Shown here piece after piece: positions 21,101 through 57,280 of a stretch of DNA of 64,000 nt. Below the pieces are notes generated by a model, which saw only the letters and a list, made by a program, of their open reading frames with translations, did no database searches and had not been told where the DNA came from. The position numbers and the translations under genes are program-made. The DNA comes from Amoebophrya sp. A120 (lineage: Eukaryota > Protista > Dinoflagellata). Where the stretch lies: assembly GCA_905178155.1 (NCBI GenBank), contig CAJINV010000012.1, forward strand, positions 864,004 through 928,003, in the 5' to 3' direction. Every line of letters starts with the position of its first letter. Position 1 is the stretch's first letter.

Positions 21101-23630
21101 GGTGCAACAGAAATTCATCGACTTTTTCGTCCGGGTGTTGGTAGTCTTGACTTTGCGGTTCGTTTAACGCTTCATACATGACAATCAAACCGGGGTATTG
21201 CTCGTTCACTTTGTTGATCCATTTGAAATATCAAAGGCAAATAGAAGTATGTCTAGGTCGTCAACTGGAAGAGTGCAAAGTTTGCCGTGGTGCATCTCCT
21301 AGAATACAAAGTAGTTGGTCTGTATCTGTAATGCGCCCACAAGCATCACAGATTGATTGCACAGGAGCGCCTTTAATCATGCCTATCCCGTTTGAGAAAG
21401 TCAGCCTCTGTGTGGTTTGCCGTCCATGCAACACAGATTTTTGTCCTGTACTACTCCAGACTTGTAAATAGCATCACAGGTTGCAAATGCAATAGCAATA
21501 TTCCAGACCCACTCAGACACATTTCCAATGCATATGAACGCTCGCTCCGTGATTTTTTCCATGTAGGTCAGCCACGAGCCGTAGGGTATCTTCGGAGGTT
21601 GTTGTCCGTATAATGCGTTTTCCTTTTCGAACGGGTTGCAATCCGTGTATCAAATGCAAAAGTGTCTGGGGGTCTGGAAATGTCATGCACATTTTGCATG
21701 ACTCCTGATGTCTGCGATGTATGCCCTAGCATCACAGGTCTTGTGAGGGCTTTCTGATGCCTATACCGCAAGAGAAATGCCCTCTCGCCGTGGCCAAAAC
21801 CAGACCTCTTTTATTGTTCATGCAATACAGATTTTTGGATAATGCAGACGCAGCATCACAAGTTGCATTCTTCCAGACGACCCAGACGTTTTTGCATTTG
21901 ATACCGTGTAGAAGCACGCATTTCTTCCATCATCCGTCTTGGCCGTCTTGTAGCCCGTATCCTGTGCAAAAGTATCGTTCTCGTACTAATTGCGTTTATG
22001 CATTACAAACCTTTTCATCAAGGCAAATCCGCATTACAAATAATTCAATTTGTAATGCTAAGTGAATTTGTAATGCAATTCATACTAGTACGATACTTTT
22101 GCAATGCATACCCCGCGAACCCCTGGTCTTCGATGCCCACGCCCGCAATCGCGTGCATGTCGATAAAAACACGCATGCAGCGCTCGTAGAAGTAGGGCAG
22201 CAGGCTTTCCAAAACCGCTAGACTGGAACCCACCGCGAACCCCTCCTGGTTCCACCAGATGGGTGGTGGGAGCCGCGGGGAATTCATTTCTTGGTGCGTC
22301 GTACTGTTGTTTCCATTCTCATCAACAGCGGCAGCTGTAGCCGACGGTATGTCATACCCCTTATTCCAGGTTGGATGCGCTTCCTCATCGTTCCACTCGC
22401 TGAAAAGCCAGTAACCGATCGGGATTCTCAACACGTTCACCCCAATCGAGTGCAAGTCGTCTAGTAATTCTTCCGGCACGAAGTTTGCCCAGTGTGCGTG
22501 TAGCAGCGACAAAGCGTGTTGGCGCGCTTCGTGCTCCAGGTCTTCATCATGCTGTGGTAAAAGTGCTCCTGGATTCTCATTCTTCCCTTTTTGCAGTTTC
22601 GTTTCAAAATAAGGGATAAAGCGCTCGTGAATGATCTGCCACTCGGCCATTCCCCAGCAGTCCGTGTCCGTGTTGGCTCGGCCGACTATGGCGCTCTCAA
22701 GCGTTACATTCTCAACTGTTACATGAATCCGTCATGCAAAAACACCATCATCATCCTCACGATCAAGCTGCAGCTCCGCATTAGAAATTTGCGAGGGGCT
22801 TCTAAACCGCGCCTAGATCTGCGCGGAATTGGTAATGCTACAGGTGCAACCTTCCCCCTTTCACTTTTCCCATTCTTGCATCACAAGTTCATGTAACAGT
22901 TGAGAATGTAACGTTTGAGAACACCATACCGAAAGTGTCGTCATTGCCGCTGTCGTACACCCACCCACTGAACATCCAGCCCTCCATATCCAGGAAAAAA
23001 ACTGAGTAAGTGTAAATTTGTGTTGCAGAAAATGCAAAACTGTTACACTTGTCATGCTGGACATGCATCAGAGGCAATTTTCGTTCGTGTTTTCACGTAC
23101 TAGCGACGCATGACAGGTTTTCTGTGTCATGCAGAGCAAACTTGTGATGCTATTCCTCCAAAAAACTTACACTTACACAGTTTTTTTCCTGGATACTCCA
23201 GTACCAGCCAGGACCCCAGGTTCGCGCCAAGCGGGCCCCAGGGCCCGCATTGGGAAGGATCGGCCATGTTGGTCATAGTCGACGAGTGTGATTCTGATTG
23301 TGCTAGTTGTGCTCGTTGTTGCTCAACAAAAGCAAATCTTCCAGACGGAGGTGCCGTGGGTAATATGGAATGGCTCTCTGTTGTCTGTCCACCTGCTGGG
23401 CGTGTTTTTTGTTTTTCATTTTCATCTCTTCTCGTAGAAATAATACCGGTCCTCCTGCTCGTCGCATGGAACGTTTTCTCGAGACGCAACGCAACAGCCG
23501 GACTGCTCGTCGACGTGGTGTGGAGGATGAAAACGGCAAAAAGATGAAAGCCGGGGGAAAATACTGCTCCTCGCCTCGACGAGCCTCGCCGTTTATCTTC
23601 GGCAGCTCGTTGGATTAGGAGTGGCGACAT
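18196..23630 (-). CDS. Glycoside hydrolase family 5 (exo-1,3-beta-glucanase/cellulase-like) with C-terminal TM helix; 9 introners
   Basis: Spliced motifs GANLGSWLVLEGWM, GVNVLRIPIGYW, VFIDMHA, YEALNEP (acid/base), DFHNY, SGEWS (nucleophile). TM segment WAMVGVVLTIVIGVLVVSACLGWFL. Confidence 0.88.
19536..19797. mobile_element. TIR introner, family A
   Basis: DR GTCTT. Confidence 0.9.
19938..20156. mobile_element. TIR introner, family K
   Basis: GAAAAAAACTGTGT..GTAAGTGTAA arms; DR CCACC. Confidence 0.9.
20190..20500. mobile_element. TIR introner, family L
   Basis: GGAAAAAT.CCCC..CCCCATATC arms; DR GTTTT. Confidence 0.9.
20917..21099. mobile_element. TIR introner, family B (reverse orientation)
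   Basis: Begins TATCCACAGTAAAT; DR TGGTG. Confidence 0.87.
21229..21534. mobile_element. TIR introner, family A (degenerate)
   Basis: DR TGAAA/TGAAC. Confidence 0.75.
21648..21903. mobile_element. TIR introner, family A
   Basis: DR CCGTG. Confidence 0.9.
21958..22110. mobile_element. TIR introner, family F
   Basis: DR GCCCG/CCCCG. Confidence 0.88.
22687..22928. mobile_element. TIR introner, family E
   Basis: DR CCGAC/CCGAA. Confidence 0.88.
22987..23195. mobile_element. TIR introner, family K
   Basis: DR CTCCA; removal gives WLVLEGWM. Confidence 0.92.
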
Positions 23631-23984
23631 GATTGATTCTCGTGGTGACTTGATCTTTTTTGCGCTTGCTGTACAAAAGAACTTCTTCTATGTGAGATCA
23701 CTCCTGAAGGTATCGTAATTTCTACTGAGGTGGGTGCGTTGTACTAGCGTTGTATCATCTTTGTCCTAGGGAACAAACGTCAGTCCACCTGTGATTGAAA
23801 GCAACAATTCGGTATACGATTTTGCGCTCTACAACTTCTTGTGTGCTCAGATGTTGATGAAAAACGCATCGTACATTTACACCAAGCTCGATTTTTTTGG
23901 TTGTGTAGGTACGATGAAGGTACTTAAAACAACGAAATCAAGGGGCACGACGAGCACGAAAGCAAGAAGAGCAAGATGCACGAC

Positions 23985-24026
23985 GAGCACGACTTCTACA
24001 GGACGAGGAGCATAAGGACGAAATTT
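23985..24026 (+). repeat. 42-bp junction motif, copy 1
   Basis: GAGCACGACTTCTACAGGACGAGGAGCATAAGGACGAAATTT. Confidence 0.9.
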
Positions 24027-24028
24027 TT

Positions 24029-24149
24029 GCACTCTTATAAATGCATTACAAATTTCCTCAGCGTGAGAAATTTGTAATGCGGATTTACCTTGAGAAAAAA
24101 ATTTGTAATGCATGACTGCAATACGAGCGCGATACTTTTGCACAGTATA
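24029..24149. mobile_element. Family F introner, left end truncated at the 42-bp motif
   Basis: Right TIR intact; left TIR begins mid-sequence (GCACTCTTATAAATGC). Confidence 0.75.
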
Positions 24150-24205
24150 GGTTTGCGAGATTCTCGCGAGCGGAACGGTGATCGGGCGCACCCGGGCCCG
24201 GCCGA

Positions 24206-24314
24206 TATCCAGGAAAAAACAACCATCCCCATCCATTTTATGCATCACAAACACAAGACTTCATACATGGTTTGCATGACAAATTGGATGGGGATGGGTT
24301 TTTTTCTGTGGATA
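24206..24314. mobile_element. TIR introner, family M
   Basis: CCATCCCCATCCA arms; DR GCCGA. Confidence 0.9.
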
Positions 24315-24459
24315 GCCGAACGAAGCCGACTTCAAAGACTATCCGATCATGGCCGCGGATGAAACCGTGGGCACGATCGGCGTGCTAATTTACGCTGTGA
24401 AGAAGGCCGACACCTCGCGGGCCTCCCAAGCCGTCGGGTCCCGGACGAGCCTCCGCACG

Positions 24460-24782
24460 TATCAGACTGTCAGGATTGAAATCGACAAAGGTGAAATAAC
24501 TTGCAATGCATAGATGCGATACCACTTGGGACTGGGAGCCCAATTGTTCAGCGGTGCATGATAAATTTCGACGTCATTAAAATCCAGTTTGTCATGCTGT
24601 TTAGCGAAAGCAGGCATCCTTTATCATGCTAGTTTAGAAGCAGCCCTATCCCAAACCCGAAGCTACAGGTTCACAATCGGCCTCACTTGCTGCAATCCCT
24701 GCAAGACAGTCACTTCGTGCCGTGCATTTTATGCATCACAGATTGTTTCAACTTTGTCGATTTCAATACTAACACACCCATA
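24460..24782. mobile_element. TIR introner, family H
   Basis: DR GCACG. Confidence 0.9.
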
Positions 24783-24893
24783 GCACGCCGGTCGCGGGTG
24801 GCAGTTCCTCGTCGAAGGGACTGGTGCTGCGCGTGGACAAAGTCGCGGAGATACCAACGGCGGCGTTGAGCAAAAAGCAGGGCGCACTCAGCA

Positions 24894-25149
24894 TATGGAC
24901 GAGTTCTCAAATGTTACATTTCCAACTCTTACACGAATTTGTATTGCAAGAATCGCAAAAGTGAAAGTCAAAGAACGGAGGTCGTTGCACCTGTAGCATT
25001 GCAAATTCCGCATGGATAATTTCGGTGCTGTTTAGCCTTTCCAAAATTTGTCATGCGAAGTAGCTTGATCGTGGCGAAGATGTTGATAGTGATTCTGCAT
25101 GACAAGAAATCGCGTAGCATTTGAGAATGTAACGCTTGAGAACGCCATA
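24894..25149. mobile_element. TIR introner, family E
   Basis: DR CAGCA. Confidence 0.9.
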
Positions 25150-25419
25150 CAGCATCCGGGCGGGATACGGGACCGATCCGCAGACCTTCAAGTTGAGGAC
25201 GCAGGAACAGGTTTTTTTTTATACATATGACAAGTCTACTGCTTCTTTTTTAATTATGTATCGCTATTGGTTGTGTAGAAGATGTGACTGTAAGTGTAAA
25301 CCCTTGTTCAGACGCTGCAAGTATAAAATAAATCACTTTTTTTAACAGAAACCCAAAGTGCCGGACGGGCAGAAGACGGCGCGGGCGATTTTCCAGCAGA
25401 GTGTCCAGCTGGGAGAGGT

Positions 25420-25461
25420 GAGCACGACTTCTACAGGACGAGGAGCATAAGGACGAAATTT
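25420..25461 (+). repeat. 42-bp junction motif, copy 2
   Basis: Identical to copy 1. Confidence 0.9.
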
Positions 25462-25643
25462 CGCTTGGTTATATGGGGAGGTACCTCTTCAATATGGGGA
25501 GGGGGGATTTTTCCTTGCGATATCTTGTTCTTCATCTTCCCCGCCTGCGCTTCCACCTCGCGACCATGCTCATGGAGGTTATGGAAGGGCCAGGTGAGGA
25601 TAAGCAGGACCACGACCAGGAGCACGTCGCTTCTTGTTTTCAA
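25462..25643 (-). pseudogene. 5' fragment of a gene running into a truncated family L introner
   Basis: Hydrophobic ORF segment LLVVVLLILTW followed by a single L-type TIR arm (ending near 25522) cut off at the 42-bp motif. Confidence 0.4.
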
Positions 25644-27689
25644 TAAATAAAATCAACCCTTTGCTCGCCTCTTATGGCCTGCGAGTAACTGTCTGACATA
25701 TACAGCTAAAGAATCCTGAGAGCAAGTCCTTTGCGAAAACTCCTGAGAGCTTAGGCACTACAACAAGACCAAACACCACCCGTTTTAGCGGTGAACGACC
25801 AAGTGTAGGGAGTCGCACAGTATGAGTGAGTCCGAAAACTCACTGCTGCTGCGCTTCAGATAAGCATCACACTACCTCCTCATCCGTGTGAGCAGATCAA
25901 CCTCCAAAGAGCCGCCAGTGCTGAACAACCCGCCTCACGTGCTCAACCTGACGTCAAACCGGATCCAAGAACCACAGCGCTACCAGGGGTCTCGCTGACT
26001 CTCGAACCGCCGGAGCGGAAGGAGAGGTATACCGACGCCACCGGGGGCCACAGGAAAACACGGAGTTATGCCCTGCGCCGCCAGTTGCCACCGCCTAGGC
26101 TTGGAGCCTTGCCTTTTCTTTTCTTTTATATGAGTTTTCTCCTTTCCAGCCCGGCGGGTGCTGGAAGGTGGCGCGTTTTTCTTTCTTTTACTGTTTTGCG
26201 CTCTTGAGTTTTTTTTTTTTTATTCTTTGGTCCCAATCTTGGCACCTCAAAGAATCTTTTAGGAGGTTGCGCGATAAAAGGAAGAAAGTCACTGGGGGTT
26301 TTCATCTTTGCAAAAGATCCGCCGGCCTTGCCAGCCCTAGTCTGCCCATTGGCCAAACGGGAAAAAAAAAAAAAAAGAACAAGCCCCACTCTCCCCCCCC
26401 GATGGACTAGATTCTTGCTTTCCTCAGAGTGGTGAGGACAGAAAGAATACTTTATGGCAACTACGGAAGATCATCAGAAAGAAAAGTAAGAATCTCGCAA
26501 AAGAAAAAGACACCGATGGCATCTCTCAGGCAAGAGCAAGAGCTGGACTGCCTTTAATACCTGGCTTTCACCTAGGCATTACAGACATTCTAGCGGAACA
26601 TCAAGAGCTGGAGAGCTACATCTAGAGCTTCAATACAAAATCAAGAAAACGGCTCCTGGTGTTCATTTTGTTCCATTGCAAAAAATCCCGCTGCAGGTTG
26701 TATCGTTCATTTTCATCTTTAGGTGTGGGTTATAATCAATGCTCTTTTGTAAGTACAACATCATCTGCTGTGTGATCAAATAGATCAAGATCAAGAGTCA
26801 AAAAAACAAGCGGTGCAAGACAAAAGAATTTGCGGAACCGCAAACAGTGTGCAAAATGTCTGGGTTGTTTCTTCCGACATGAGAGTTGAGTTTTCAATAA
26901 ATAAAATCAAGTATAGTTTCTTTGCCACTCACACCTTTTCAACTTGTGATGGGGGTGTTGACCACTCGCACTCTTGCAGAGGACGGGGTCTACTACCTTT
27001 ATTTTTTGTATATGCATACGACTCCAGTCCACATTTCGAAAATGCAAGAAGAGAAACATCTCCAACGACCCACAGATGACCCTTCCATACAGGTTCAGGC
27101 CGCGCCGAGGGTGCTGCAGCTGGTAGGCTTCGGCGAGACTGTTTTGGTTGTGAAACAAGTCCGCCAACACCGCAGCATGCGGCAACGTCTTCCACGTCAA
27201 AAGCTGCTGACGGCGCGACATCATCTTCACCATAGCTTAATATTACTTTGCTCCGGTTCTTGCGGTTTCTTTCTTGATGCGTTCCTGCCAAGACTGAAAG
27301 CCGCTTGATATTCTTTTTCGGACTCGAGTACAAAAGCAACTACACTGGGTGCCGTAGTTCTTTGGTGGATTATACAGACAAGATGTTGAAGGACGTGAAG
27401 ATGCGGTAGTTTATTTCCGTAGTACAAGTTCGCTATTCTTGCGTTTTTCTAAAAGCTTCTAACTCTGTAGTTGCTTTGATGTGGGTTTAGGTTTAGCTTA
27501 AGCTTTAGTGCATGCGTATAATAACTGTCTTCTAAACTGGTGGAGTGGAGGTCAAGTGGTGGGGACGATGGGTTTTGTACATCGTCTGACTCTGACTACA
27601 ATGGGACTGGTCTGATTCATATCTTTATCTTCAATGAAGATCATATAGTGGGGTAGTAACTACTTGCTCCACCGGCACTGTCTGCTGCA

Positions 27690-27759
27690 AGCAAATCTGT
27701 CATGCAAGACCAAAGGCACAGGCATTTATACGAGTACGATACTTGTTTTGCAATCCATA
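27690..27759. mobile_element. Family F introner remnant (right arm only)
   Basis: TACGAGTACGATACTTGTTTTGCAATCCATA|GGTCT. Confidence 0.7.
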
Positions 27760-28340
27760 GGTCTGTTGTGGTCGCTATGTAGGGGGAGGAGGATGAAGCA
27801 GAACCGCCGCCAAGGTTCAACCCCATGCCCATGCCGCCATGCGGCTGCTGGGAGGTTGTGCTAGAGTTGTTGCTCATGCTGTAGGTGTTTCCCGGCCGGT
27901 TATTTTTAAAACGAGAGGATGAGGAGGAAGCTCCTGCACCGGTACTGCTGTTCGTCGTGGACTGCGAACTTACCGTTCTGGCCAAGAGCCCGGTGGAGAT
28001 TACGTCAAAATCATCGACATCGTCGTCGAAGGTGAAGGAGGTGTCAAATGGATTATGATTTCCTGGTGGACTCGCCGTGGCCGCCGAGTTTCGGAGTTTG
28101 GATTTCGAATTGTGACGTCTAGCTGCATTTCTTTGTTGGTGTTGTGAAGAAGTTGAAGTAGAAGAAGACACTCCGGGAGGGGAAAAGTCGTCCATTCACC
28201 GACTTTTGAAGTGCAGTATTCAGCTCGTGGTCACTAGTCACAGCCACACCGGAGCAGCTAGAGAATCTGCTCGGTTGGTGAAAGTGGAGTTTCTTGGCGG
28301 ACTACTTTGATGTGATTGGTGACCGCCCATTGGCGCATTC
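27760..28340 (-). pseudogene. Duplicated 5' fragment (upstream region plus exon 1) of the MFS gene
   Basis: ORF MDDFSPPGVSSSTSTSS...YIATTTD is near-identical to 45878-46322; similarity continues upstream (about 28196-28340 vs 46323-46470). Confidence 0.85.
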
Positions 28341-28371
28341 GCGCATCAGCAGGGCGAAACTCTAATAACGA

Positions 28372-28413
28372 GACCACAACTTCTACAGGACGAGGACCAT
28401 AAGGACGAAATTT
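28372..28413 (+). repeat. 42-bp junction motif, copy 3
   Basis: 39/42 identical to copy 1. Confidence 0.85.
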
Positions 28414-45700: not shown

Positions 45701-46322
45701 TGCAAGACAGTGGCTTTGTGCTGTGTTTTCCCTTCGGAGCGCTGCATGGCAAATTTTCTCTGCCATGTAGAACAAACAAACTTGTGATGCAAAACCTGCA
45801 AAATCCTTACAGTGAAACACTTTTTTCGTACGATAGCATGCCATTGGTCGGGGTGGACGCGCCGTGGAGGACGTTGGGGTCTGTTGTGGTTGCGATGTAG
45901 GGGGAAGATGAGGAAGCGGAACTACCGCCGCCAAGGTTCAACCCCATGCCCATGCCGCCGTGCGGCTGCTGAGAGGTTGTGCTAGAGTTGTTGCTCATGC
46001 TGTAGGTGTCTCTAGGCCGGTTATTTTTAAAACGAGAGAATGAGGAGGAAGCTCCTGCACCGGTACTGCTATTCGTCGTGGAAAGTGAGCTTACCGTCCT
46101 GGCTAAGAGACCGGTCGAGATCACGTCGAAATCATCGACATCGTCGTCGAAGGTGAAGGAGGTGTTAAATGGGTTATGATTTGTTCCTGATGGACTTGCC
46201 GTGGCCGCCGAGTTTCGGAGTTTGGACTTCGAATTGTGACGTCTAGCTGCATTTTTTTGTTGGTGTTGTGTTGAAGAAGTCGAAGTAGAAGAAGACACTC
46301 CGGGAGGGGAAAAGTCGTCCAT
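42779..46322 (-). CDS. Major facilitator superfamily transporter, Spinster-like; 4 introners plus 1 GT-AG intron
   Basis: LLSADQNLASPHL, GPMADVYPRVRLL (motif A-like), RILTGIS|VGGSYPIIYSVLADIFP, GWRFVFF, QSIPGCVPW, DDLGKGFAP. Canonical intron 44464-44614. Confidence 0.88.
43524..43679. mobile_element. TIR introner, family F
   Basis: DR ACGCC/ACACC. Confidence 0.88.
44871..45032. mobile_element. TIR introner, family F
   Basis: DR TTGTG. Confidence 0.9.
45303..45574. mobile_element. TIR introner, family A
   Basis: DR CTGGC. Confidence 0.9.
45624..45835. mobile_element. TIR introner, family N
   Basis: GAAAAAA.TG.TTC.CTGT arms; DR GCATG. Confidence 0.88.
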
Positions 46323-46554
46323 TCACCGACTTTTGAAGTTCCGTATTCGGCTCGTCACCAGTAGCAGGCACGGCAGGAGCAGCTAGAGAATCTGCTCGGC
46401 TGGTGAAAGTGCAGCTTGGCGGACTACTTTGTGATTGCGATTGGGACCGCCGGTCGGCGCACGCATTCGCAGTTCACGTCGTACACGTTACACCTTCACC
46501 TATGGCATAATTATAATAATACAAAATCTGGTCCGGGCCTCCGTATAAATATAA

Positions 46555-55177: not shown

Positions 55178-57280
55178 CCTTCAAATTATCTACCTCGCGT
55201 TTGGATGTGTGTCCCCTCTTTCTCTCAGCAAACCTCTCTCCTGCAGTCGTTTTTGAACAAAAGGCTCGGAGAGACATCAATAGACAGAGGTGTCAGCCAG
55301 GCCGTGTTGCAAACCGGCACTTCCACTTTCCGTGGTCCTCATTCACACTGATGGTGATGGTCCCTCTAACTTTGAAAAACAAAAACTGATTTTTTTCAAT
55401 AACGATAATTGGAAGAACGAACTCAAATGTTCTACGTGCTTTTACCTTCGTCGTCAGTCTAGTTCTGCTACGGGCTCCTGCAAAAAAGAAAGAACGTCCG
55501 GTCTCTTCGTGCACTGCACGACAAACTGGCCTCAGAAACTACAGCGGAAGTAGTACTTAGAACAACTACTTCCTGCGTTTCAGGCCGCCGCGGTCCCAGG
55601 AATTTCTCGATCTTAGTGGAGCATAATTCATCTGAAGACACCGCATATGAAGAATGAACGTAAGTGCGACCGCCGAGCAAGCTGCACTTCTGGCGCTGTC
55701 CGCGAAGGAGAATAAGACCTCCAGGACGAACAACAGCTCGTCTCGCCAGACAAACAAAAACTTGTGAAGAAAAGAACTAAATCAACATATATTTTTGCGT
55801 ACTAGACAGGAAAGTGAGGAAGTCTCAAAGTCAGCTACACCACGACTACACCAGCTCATTTCCATCCACATGACTTCCTCATGCTCGCTCCTGCCCTTCA
55901 TCCCGCCCGGTACTGTAGCTCTGGCGGTCGCTGTTCTGCGCCCATTACATTTACACGACCACCTCCGAACCCGGATGCAGTAGTTCCCGCACCTGCTGTG
56001 CCCCCGTTTTGCGGCGTGCAATTGTTCGAGGCCACGCTGTTTGGGACGGAGGAAGAAACCTGCAGCTCAAAGGTCACTTCGTCCTTCTTCCTCTTCCTTG
56101 CCTTCAAATCATTTCCCTCGCGTTTGGAAGTATTTCGTCCCCTTATTCTCTCAGCAAACATCAACTCTCCTGCTGCAGCGGTTTTTGAACAAAAGGCTCG
56201 GAGAGACATCAATAGACAGAAGTGTCAGCCAGGCCGTGTTGCAAACCGGCACTTCCACTTTCCGTGGTCCTCATTCACACTGATGGTGATGGTCCCTCTA
56301 ACTTTGAAAAACAAAAACTGATTTTTTTCAATAACGATAATTGGAAGAACGAACTCAAATGTCCTACGTGCTTTTAGTACCTTGTCGTCAGTCTAGTACT
56401 AGTTCTGCTACGGGCTCCTGCAAAAAAGAAAGAACGTCCGGTCTCTTCGTGCACTGCACGACAAACTGGCCTCTGAAACTACAGCGGAAGCACTTAGAGT
56501 TAGAACAGAAACTACTCCCTGCGTTTCAGACCCTCGCGGTCCCACGAATTTCTCCATCTTAGTGGAGCATAATTCTGAAGACACCGCATATGAAGAATGA
56601 AGGCAACAAGTTCTACCGCCGAGCAAGCTGCAGCTCTGTCTGCGAAGGAGAATAAGACCTGCACGAACAACAGCTCGTCTCGCCAGACAAACAAAAACTT
56701 GTGAAGAAAAGAACTAAATCAACATATATTTTTGCGTACTAGACAGGAAAGTGAGGAAGTCTCAATAAAGTTATCTAAACCACGACTACAGCCTATTTCC
56801 ATGCTGCAGATGATTTCGTCATGCTCGCTCCTGCCCTTCATCCCGCCCGATACTGTAGTTCCGGCGGTCGCTGTTCCGCGCCCATTACATATACACGACC
56901 ACCTCCGAACCCCGCTGCAGTAGTTCCTGCACCTGTTGTGCCCCCGTTTATCAAATGTAAAAATGTCTGGGTCTGGAAGAATGCAACCTGTGATGCTGCA
57001 TTTGGATTCCAGAAAAATCTGTATTGCATGAGTACCAAAAGGAATGTAATCTTTGCTACGCGGAGACGGCATCTGTCATGCGGAATAGGCATCAAGAAGC
57101 TCTCAAAAAATCTGTGATGCTAGGGCATGCATCACAGACATCAGGGCTCACGCAAAACGTGCATGACAAGTGTCACTATCTTCCAGACCCAGACACTTTT
57201 ACAGTTGATACCGTTTTGCGGCGTGCAATTGTTCGAAGCCACGCTGTTCGGCACGGAGGACGAAACTTGTAGCTCAAAAG
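55178..57280. repeat. Tandem duplication of about 0.9 kb (about 55178-56075 vs 56102-57280) covering the 3' end and downstream flank of the 56838-61025 gene
   Basis: Long near-identical stretches, e.g. GTTTTTGAACAAAAGGCTCGGAGAGACATCAATAGACAGA in both copies; the second copy carries introner 56949-57210. Confidence 0.9.

Follow-up and report, generated by a model that had tools for sequence, protein, structure and literature searches.

A recurring 42-bp motif in the genome of Amoebophrya sp. A120 as a probable product of two insertions at one intergenic nucleotide

A 42-bp motif, here called P, occurs three times in the same orientation between positions 23985 and 28413 of a 64,000-nucleotide stretch of the Amoebophrya sp. 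A120 genome (the window, C12:864004-928003), and fragments of host genes lie between the copies. The locus is probably best explained by two successive insertions at the same nucleotide, directly after the letters AAATTT, each of which duplicated 42-47 bp of native intergenic target. P itself is very likely a target sequence that was duplicated twice, and not the end of an element, because it is unique to the locus, is missing from the donors of the inserted DNA, and ages together with the cargo beside it. That a retroelement enzyme did the copying is a tentative proposal, plausible and somewhat short of probable. Two properties of the locus are unusual. One is the length of the duplication, 42-47 bp, and the other is the occurrence of two events, separated in time, with the same right border and with left borders within 5 nt of each other.

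Genome-wide searches covered the published A120 assembly of 115.5 Mb, which was built from Oxford Nanopore Technologies (ONT) and Illumina data (PMC7789003). The structure of the window, its junctions included, was read from the assembly sequence of this one strain. Introner elements, which bear inverted repeats and direct repeats of 3-5 nt, are abundant in the A120 genome (PMC7789003), and the introners of the window agree with that description. Pfam scans were run on single open reading frames (ORFs) or exons of the flanking genes, on the exon of the cargo, and on ORFs of a resident element family, X, described below. An earlier reading of this DNA from its letters (the original prediction) supplied the names 'C2-like' and 'MFS', which are used as that reader's gene labels only.

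The repeated motif and its age

The original prediction described three copies of one 42-bp sequence in a single orientation, and this description holds. P1 (23985-24026) and P2 (25420-25461) are exact copies, P3 (28372-28413) has 3 mismatches, and all three are on the plus strand. By chance, none would be expected, as judged from 100 shuffles. The identity of P1 and P2 spans exactly 42 nt and gives way to unrelated DNA on either side. P3 ends at the same right border as the other two, and on the left it may extend 4-5 nt beyond them. Positions 23926-23991 form an imperfect 33-bp tandem repeat (79% identity) that ends in GCACGACGAGCACG and takes in the first 7 nt of P1, which places the left border of P in locally repeated sequence.

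A search of the entire genome with a 34-nt core and both 24-nt halves of P, allowing up to 3 mismatches for each, returned just the three copies in the window. The sole near-match elsewhere agrees with the left half at 21 of 24 positions (C2:2965195-2965218, L044:1501-1524). It lies in an open exon, 9 nt past the end of an L-type introner, and is probably due to chance. Public metagenome contigs that were scanned contained no P, and a search for further degenerate copies in the cargo, in the flanks and at the inner joints of cargo A found none above shuffled controls. The two identifiable donors of the inserted DNA, a gene on contig C4 and the 'MFS' gene, do not carry P at either end of the copied segment.

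The divergence of the motif copies runs in parallel with that of their neighbours. P1 and P2 show no difference in 42 positions and stand beside a cargo at 0.9% from its donor, and P3, with 3 differences in 42 (7%), stands beside an 'MFS' fragment at 7.9%. Since the divergence of P matches that of the neighbouring cargo, the motif copies are as old as their cargo. Between the two cargoes, the divergence from the donor differs about nine-fold. Judged from these values, the order of events would begin with a left flank, one P and a right flank (L-P-R). The older cargo (I1) would have duplicated P, the recent cargo (I2) would have duplicated the left copy again, and a retroposon (R1) would have arrived last.

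Organization of the locus

The features along the locus, in window coordinates and with the basis of each assignment, are as follows.

23127-23630, minus strand: ORF beside flank L, starting near 23630 (ORF list)
23631-23984, no strand: left flank L, native intergenic DNA that lies upstream of the minus-strand ORF; apart from the 42-mer, present nowhere else in the genome
23985-24026, plus strand: P1, left copy of the probable younger target duplication; exact match, identical to P2 over 42 nt
24027-24028, plus strand: two extra T at the junction of P1 and cargo (donor ...GTATC/GCACTC, window ...AAATTT/TT/GCACTC)
24029-25419, plus strand: cargo I2 (cargo B), copied plus-strand gene segment of contig C4 (C4 homology)
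25420-25461, plus strand: P2, exact; it shares its first 4 nt, GAGC, with the end of the C4 homology
25462-25478, plus strand: 17-nt filler at the junction of P2 and I1, containing a second copy of ATATGGGGAGG (alignment to L-type introners)
25479-25526, plus strand: final 48 nt of an L-type introner whose left part is absent (exact copies elsewhere; introner alignment)
25527-25635, no strand: orphan DNA S1a, 109 nt, labelled a 5' piece of another gene in the original prediction; no other copy in the assembly
25636-26910, minus strand: retroposon R1 with its 21-bp duplications, body about 25657-26889 (copies on C8 and C4)
26911-27689, no strand: orphan DNA S1b, 779 nt; self-match only, in genome and window
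27690-27759, minus strand: about 70 nt of introner joined to the 'MFS' gene fragment (comparison with the intact gene)
27760-28346, minus strand: copy of the 5' end of the 'MFS' gene, with upstream region and start of the coding sequence (homology to 45878-46470)
28347-28371, no strand: 25 nt between the 'MFS' fragment and P3 (homology to 46424-46476 stops here)
28372-28413, plus strand: P3, right copy of the probable older target duplication, with 3 mismatches, followed by native flank R
45878-46470, minus strand: donor of the 'MFS' fragment, with no adjoining 42-mer (homology)

The recent cargo

The cargo between P1 and P2 is a copy of a gene segment on C4. Positions 24029-25280 correspond to C4:4200347-4201596 with 8 substitutions and positions 25292-25423 to C4:4207366-4207490 with 4 substitutions, which gives 12 substitutions in 1371 nt (0.9%). 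The left end of the cargo lies 19 nt inside a 140-nt introner, so that the first 19 nt of the introner are missing. Three more introners and one GT-AG intron are retained, which supports the proposal in the original prediction that the copying took place at the level of DNA or unspliced RNA. The right end consists of an exon followed by GTGAGC, 2-6 nt beyond the 5' splice site, and the final GAGC is shared with the first 4 nt of P2 as a 4-nt microhomology.

In the C4 donor, the two homologous parts are 5.8 kb apart. The DNA between them (C4:4201597-4207365) is GC-rich and lies within an intron of the donor gene. This insertion (L045/L046) contains minisatellites of 185, 214 and 33 bp together with multicopy elements, and one multicopy family ends precisely at the homology border. 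A patchwork of two templates was considered for cargo B and is ruled out, the divider on C4 being multicopy element DNA that ends at that border. What the window holds is therefore a single, contiguous 1.39-kb copy of the C4 gene segment as it was before that insertion. The window copy lacks the 5.8-kb insertion, so either the insertion is younger than about 0.9% divergence or it was polymorphic. One family within it recurs elsewhere as pairs about 6 kb apart, and this spacing suggests that the paired copies are terminal repeats.

No Pfam hit was obtained for the cargo exon or for the ORFs and exons of the flanking genes; MFS_5 was found only for a neighbour of the C4 donor. The C4 locus and the window were also compared as possible paralogous blocks, each with a neighbouring transporter-type gene, and this was ruled out, the matches being to introners only. 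Introner DNA makes up about 58% of cargo B. Breakpoints within introners were given no weight as a mechanistic signal, since the observed position of the left ends of all three gene-derived pieces in introners is expected about 1 time in 5. A link to introner-homing retroelements was dropped as well, because the junction after P1 is 20 nt away from a GCATTACA box and does not adjoin it.

The older cargo

The cargo between P2 and P3 (I1, cargo A) is a mosaic of several pieces. At its junction with P2, the 17-nt filler contains a stuttered copy of ATATGGGGAGG, whose other copy is 20 nt downstream. Foreign DNA thus begins in the middle of an introner after both P1 and P2, as the original prediction had stated, and it does so after TT at the first copy and after the 17-nt filler at the second. 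The duplication of the 'MFS' 5' end was likewise correctly recognized: positions 27760-28337 align to 45878-46461, in a gene 17.5 kb away on the same contig. The fragment is 88.8% identical to its parent when gaps are counted and 92.1% identical by substitutions only, with 45 substitutions in 571 positions (7.9%). It has an introner end (27690-27759) where the intact gene at 45878 has an uninterrupted exon, so the paralogous copies differ in the presence or absence of an introner.

The orphan DNA (S1a and S1b, about 0.9 kb together) has no source in the assembly according to a DNA search of the genome and, within the window, sensitive blastn and tblastx searches. The donors of the host fragments have accordingly been located for the C4 segment and the 'MFS' gene, and not for this part. 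The DNA that the original prediction called unassigned proved in part to be R1, a 1.2-kb multicopy retroposon; S1b does lack any other copy. Neither cargo shows a poly(A) tail at its ends, and by eye the 25 nt that adjoin the 'MFS' fragment on its 5' side bear no resemblance to the dinoflagellate spliced leader. Taken together, the two cargoes support the earlier view that one site took in host DNA repeatedly.

Insertions of resident elements

Resident mobile elements of A120 show a similar pattern of insertion. R1 is the last insertion in the locus and lies within cargo A, where it is flanked by the 21-bp target duplication GTTTTCAATAAATAAAATCAA at 25636-25656 and 26890-26910. It is 1.2 kb long and 5'-truncated, and direct BLAST found further copies at C8:3318469 (99.9%) and C4:7365167 (99.7%). 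Copies of 99.7-99.9% identity on three contigs indicate that R1 was probably active recently. The family has one constant end (...CCCTTTGCTCG on the plus strand of the window), and its other end is truncated at varying points, with a 5-nt overlap at the truncated end of the window copy. The target duplications of R1 measure 16-21 bp and always end in ATCAA, often with TCAA twice. At two loci with common flanks (L010, C6:1305966-1309527; L011, C128:1521-4836), a 562-bp internal piece of R1 sits within a direct duplication whose period is about 2 kb.

At C4:7365156-7367718 (L006:1490-4052), a copy of R1 directly adjoins a 1.38-kb element of the X family. The duplications there are about 11 bp for R1 and a perfect 33 bp for X, with left borders no more than 3 nt apart. 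X is a multicopy family with the fixed end TACTGTGTATCAGG, which is preceded by two variable nucleotides in most copies. Its opposite end is truncated and, in the one case examined, joined through microhomology. The target duplications of X measure 33 bp at L006, at least 25 bp at a second copy (L056, C12:825089-829453), and 76 bp with 2 mismatches at a third (L058, C10:2562165-2566016), where the fixed end TACTGTG shares TACT with the target.

The length of P, 42-47 bp, falls inside the range of duplications made by these elements (16-21 bp for R1; 33, at least 25 and 76 bp for X). The asymmetric junctions at P, with extra nucleotides on one side and microhomology on the other, match the two junction types of R1 and X. 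Long duplications, stacking and both types of junction are properties of insertions in the A120 genome.

A separate repeat occurs further along the window, where a tandem duplication at 55249-56849 has a period of about 935 bp and includes exact blocks of 141, 103 and 75 bp.

A model of two successive insertions

Ancestral P would have been native DNA between two minus-strand genes, in the order L-P-R. In the older event (event A), a patchwork of about 1.66 kb would have been inserted and 42-47 bp duplicated, the patchwork comprising filler, an introner tail, about 0.9 kb of sourceless DNA, a partial introner, and the 'MFS' 5' end. In the recent event (event B), a contiguous, unspliced segment of C4, 1.39 kb long, would have been placed between two perfect copies of P. 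Each insertion may have begun with nicks in the two strands, 42-47 nt apart. The 3' end at AAATTT would then prime the copying of a foreign template, and TT or a stuttered filler would be left at the junction where copying starts. Microhomology (GAGC) would join the far end of the copied DNA to the other nick, and fill-in would double P. These proposed steps have the geometry of target-primed reverse transcription. The agent may be the machinery of a resident retro-type element that copies unspliced or antisense RNA, or possibly DNA. This machinery is favoured because resident retro-type elements make target duplications of 21-76 bp and stack.

Several points weigh against this model. Neither cargo has attached retroelement sequence, poly(A) or a spliced leader. 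The cargoes are opposite in sense relative to P (the C4 gene on the plus strand and the 'MFS' gene on the minus strand), so that, on an RNA route, one of them would have to come from an antisense transcript. The retained introners and intron fit DNA templates at least as well as RNA, and about 0.9 kb of cargo A is without a source in the assembly. ORFs of the X family had no Pfam hit, and no enzyme was found in them. Finally, the model does not account for the re-use of the same nick after the sequence downstream of it had changed.

Alternative explanations

DNA-templated template switching stays a serious rival, because the cargo is unspliced, carries no element sequence or tail, and occurs in opposite senses; we consider it possible but, on the whole, unlikely. 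It would have acted twice, by fork stalling and template switching (FoSTeS) or microhomology-mediated break-induced replication (MMBIR), by synthesis-dependent strand annealing with ectopic templates, or by polymerase-theta end joining. A nascent strand would have departed once P was copied, used chromosomal DNA from elsewhere as its template, and re-entered the locus 42-47 nt behind the place where it had left. Such a process accords with cargo of unspliced genomic type, complete with introners, an intron and upstream sequence, and with cargoes in either orientation. The junctions, with their GAGC microhomology and locally templated stutter filler, are also in keeping with it, as is a donor just 17.5 kb off on the same contig. 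However, events of such different age (0.9% and about 8%) with the same right border, and with left borders within 5 nt, are not predicted by random fork collapse. The same long duplications and stacking are seen at mobile elements, which points to an insertion pathway over sporadic repair.

The original prediction took the 42-mer for the terminus of a mobile element, or for a recombinase or rolling-circle capture site (Pack-type, Helitron-like or integron-like). Three same-orientation copies, with the same borders and between unrelated host fragments, agree with this interpretation, and the internal AGGACGA repeat, present twice in P, could bind a protein. The interpretation is nevertheless very improbable. 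No copies exist beyond this locus in the 115.5 Mb at up to 3 mismatches or in the public metagenome contigs, so P is no multicopy element terminus. All copies are direct repeats, with no inverted partner in the 20-33 kb region searched, and neither P nor its surroundings fold into a hairpin or cruciform better than shuffles do. A structured RNA gene or a spliced-leader gene was considered as well and set aside, as an Rfam scan gave no match for P and only two weak microRNA-like matches, to an introner hairpin. The donors are without P, the ORF list contains no transposase-like ORF between the copies, and the divergence of P follows the age of the cargo. A motif that is confined to one locus and ages with its cargo in this way does not bear out the claim of an element terminus or recombinase site.

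A single complex event is similarly hard to credit. One chaotic synthesis would have returned and re-copied P at each joint, and the common borders would be explained by one stalled 3' end re-annealing at one place, but the cargoes differ about nine-fold in divergence, and all three substitutions are in P3 while P1 equals P2. Chimeric joins in a nanopore-based assembly are the least credible explanation: the structure was read from an assembly of ONT and Illumina data (PMC7789003), but the cargoes carry real substitutions and indels relative to their donors (0.9% and 8%) and are thus separate genomic copies, and cargo A contains a later retroposon with intact 21-bp duplications.

Implications for the A120 genome

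Insertion of this kind may extend beyond the present locus. We suggest, with some reserve, that a pathway operating across the A120 genome could re-use one nick, paste copies of about 1-1.5 kb of any template, and re-copy 25-80 bp of target. Such a pathway would have inserted pieces of mobile elements at other loci and only unspliced host gene segments at this one. If it exists, it carries fragments of host genes, among them 5' ends together with upstream regions, to new contexts. Chimeric genes and new exons could then arise by a route that differs from capture by Pack-MULEs, Helitrons or L1 retrocopies. The mark of the pathway would be very long target duplications that are anchored at one nucleotide, with return to the same spot. 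This bears on the reshuffling of gene fragments and regulatory 5' ends in a genome known for invasive introners, and on which enzyme makes the 25-76-bp duplications in A120. It also bears on annotation, as 'repeat-spacer' patterns that resemble capture arrays may be insertion scars. The locus described here is a clean case, because each of the two dated cargoes is host DNA and has an identifiable donor.

Comparison with known systems

Integron arrays (attC/attI) are alike in layout, with repeat, cargo, repeat, cargo and repeat in one orientation. In an integron-like system, the recombination site is found on the incoming DNA as well as in the recipient DNA. In contrast, the repeat of this locus is not found in the donors, has no structure and no nearby recombinase, and is present at a single eukaryotic locus.

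Capture by Pack-MULEs and Helitrons likewise brings host gene pieces with introns to a new locus as copies. Pack-MULEs and other transposons with terminal inverted repeats carry these repeats around the captured DNA and make a short target duplication of fixed length. A Helitron has a 3' subterminal hairpin with a CTRR end and a 5' TC end, and it inserts between A and T without target duplication. P folds no better than shuffles, and the repeat behaves as a duplication. The locus differs from both systems in having no terminal inverted repeats, no 5'-TC or 3'-hairpin-CTRR ends, and no multicopy family, and the repeated motif is very likely DNA of the recipient site, not of a vehicle.

Insertions made by FoSTeS/MMBIR or polymerase theta resemble the locus in their patchwork of copied inserts, microhomology, stuttered filler, and short duplication of the recipient. 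The locus differs from them by borders that recur across ages and by the same pattern around resident mobile elements.

Target-primed insertion of non-long-terminal-repeat (non-LTR) and Penelope-like elements, including cellular RNAs mobilised in trans as L1-type retrocopies, elements with very long target duplications such as R9, and Penelope-like 'tails' and tandem insertions, differs from the locus in other respects. Here the cargo is unspliced host gene DNA without element sequence or poly(A), the cargoes are of opposite sense, and the nick was apparently used twice. An L1-type processed retrocopy would be spliced and would have poly(A) or, in dinoflagellates, a relic of the spliced leader at its 5' end, whereas the cargo of this locus retains introners and an intron and shows no poly(A). 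Penelope-like elements make variable target duplications, owing to the varying distance between first- and second-strand cleavage (PMC8557442), and rotifer R9 makes exceptionally long ones (PMC8557442 and its reference list). Target-primed insertion and the locus are alike in the direct repeat that flanks the cargo, which at this locus is a probable duplication of the target, in the extra nucleotides at one junction and microhomology at the other, and in the variable length of the duplication.

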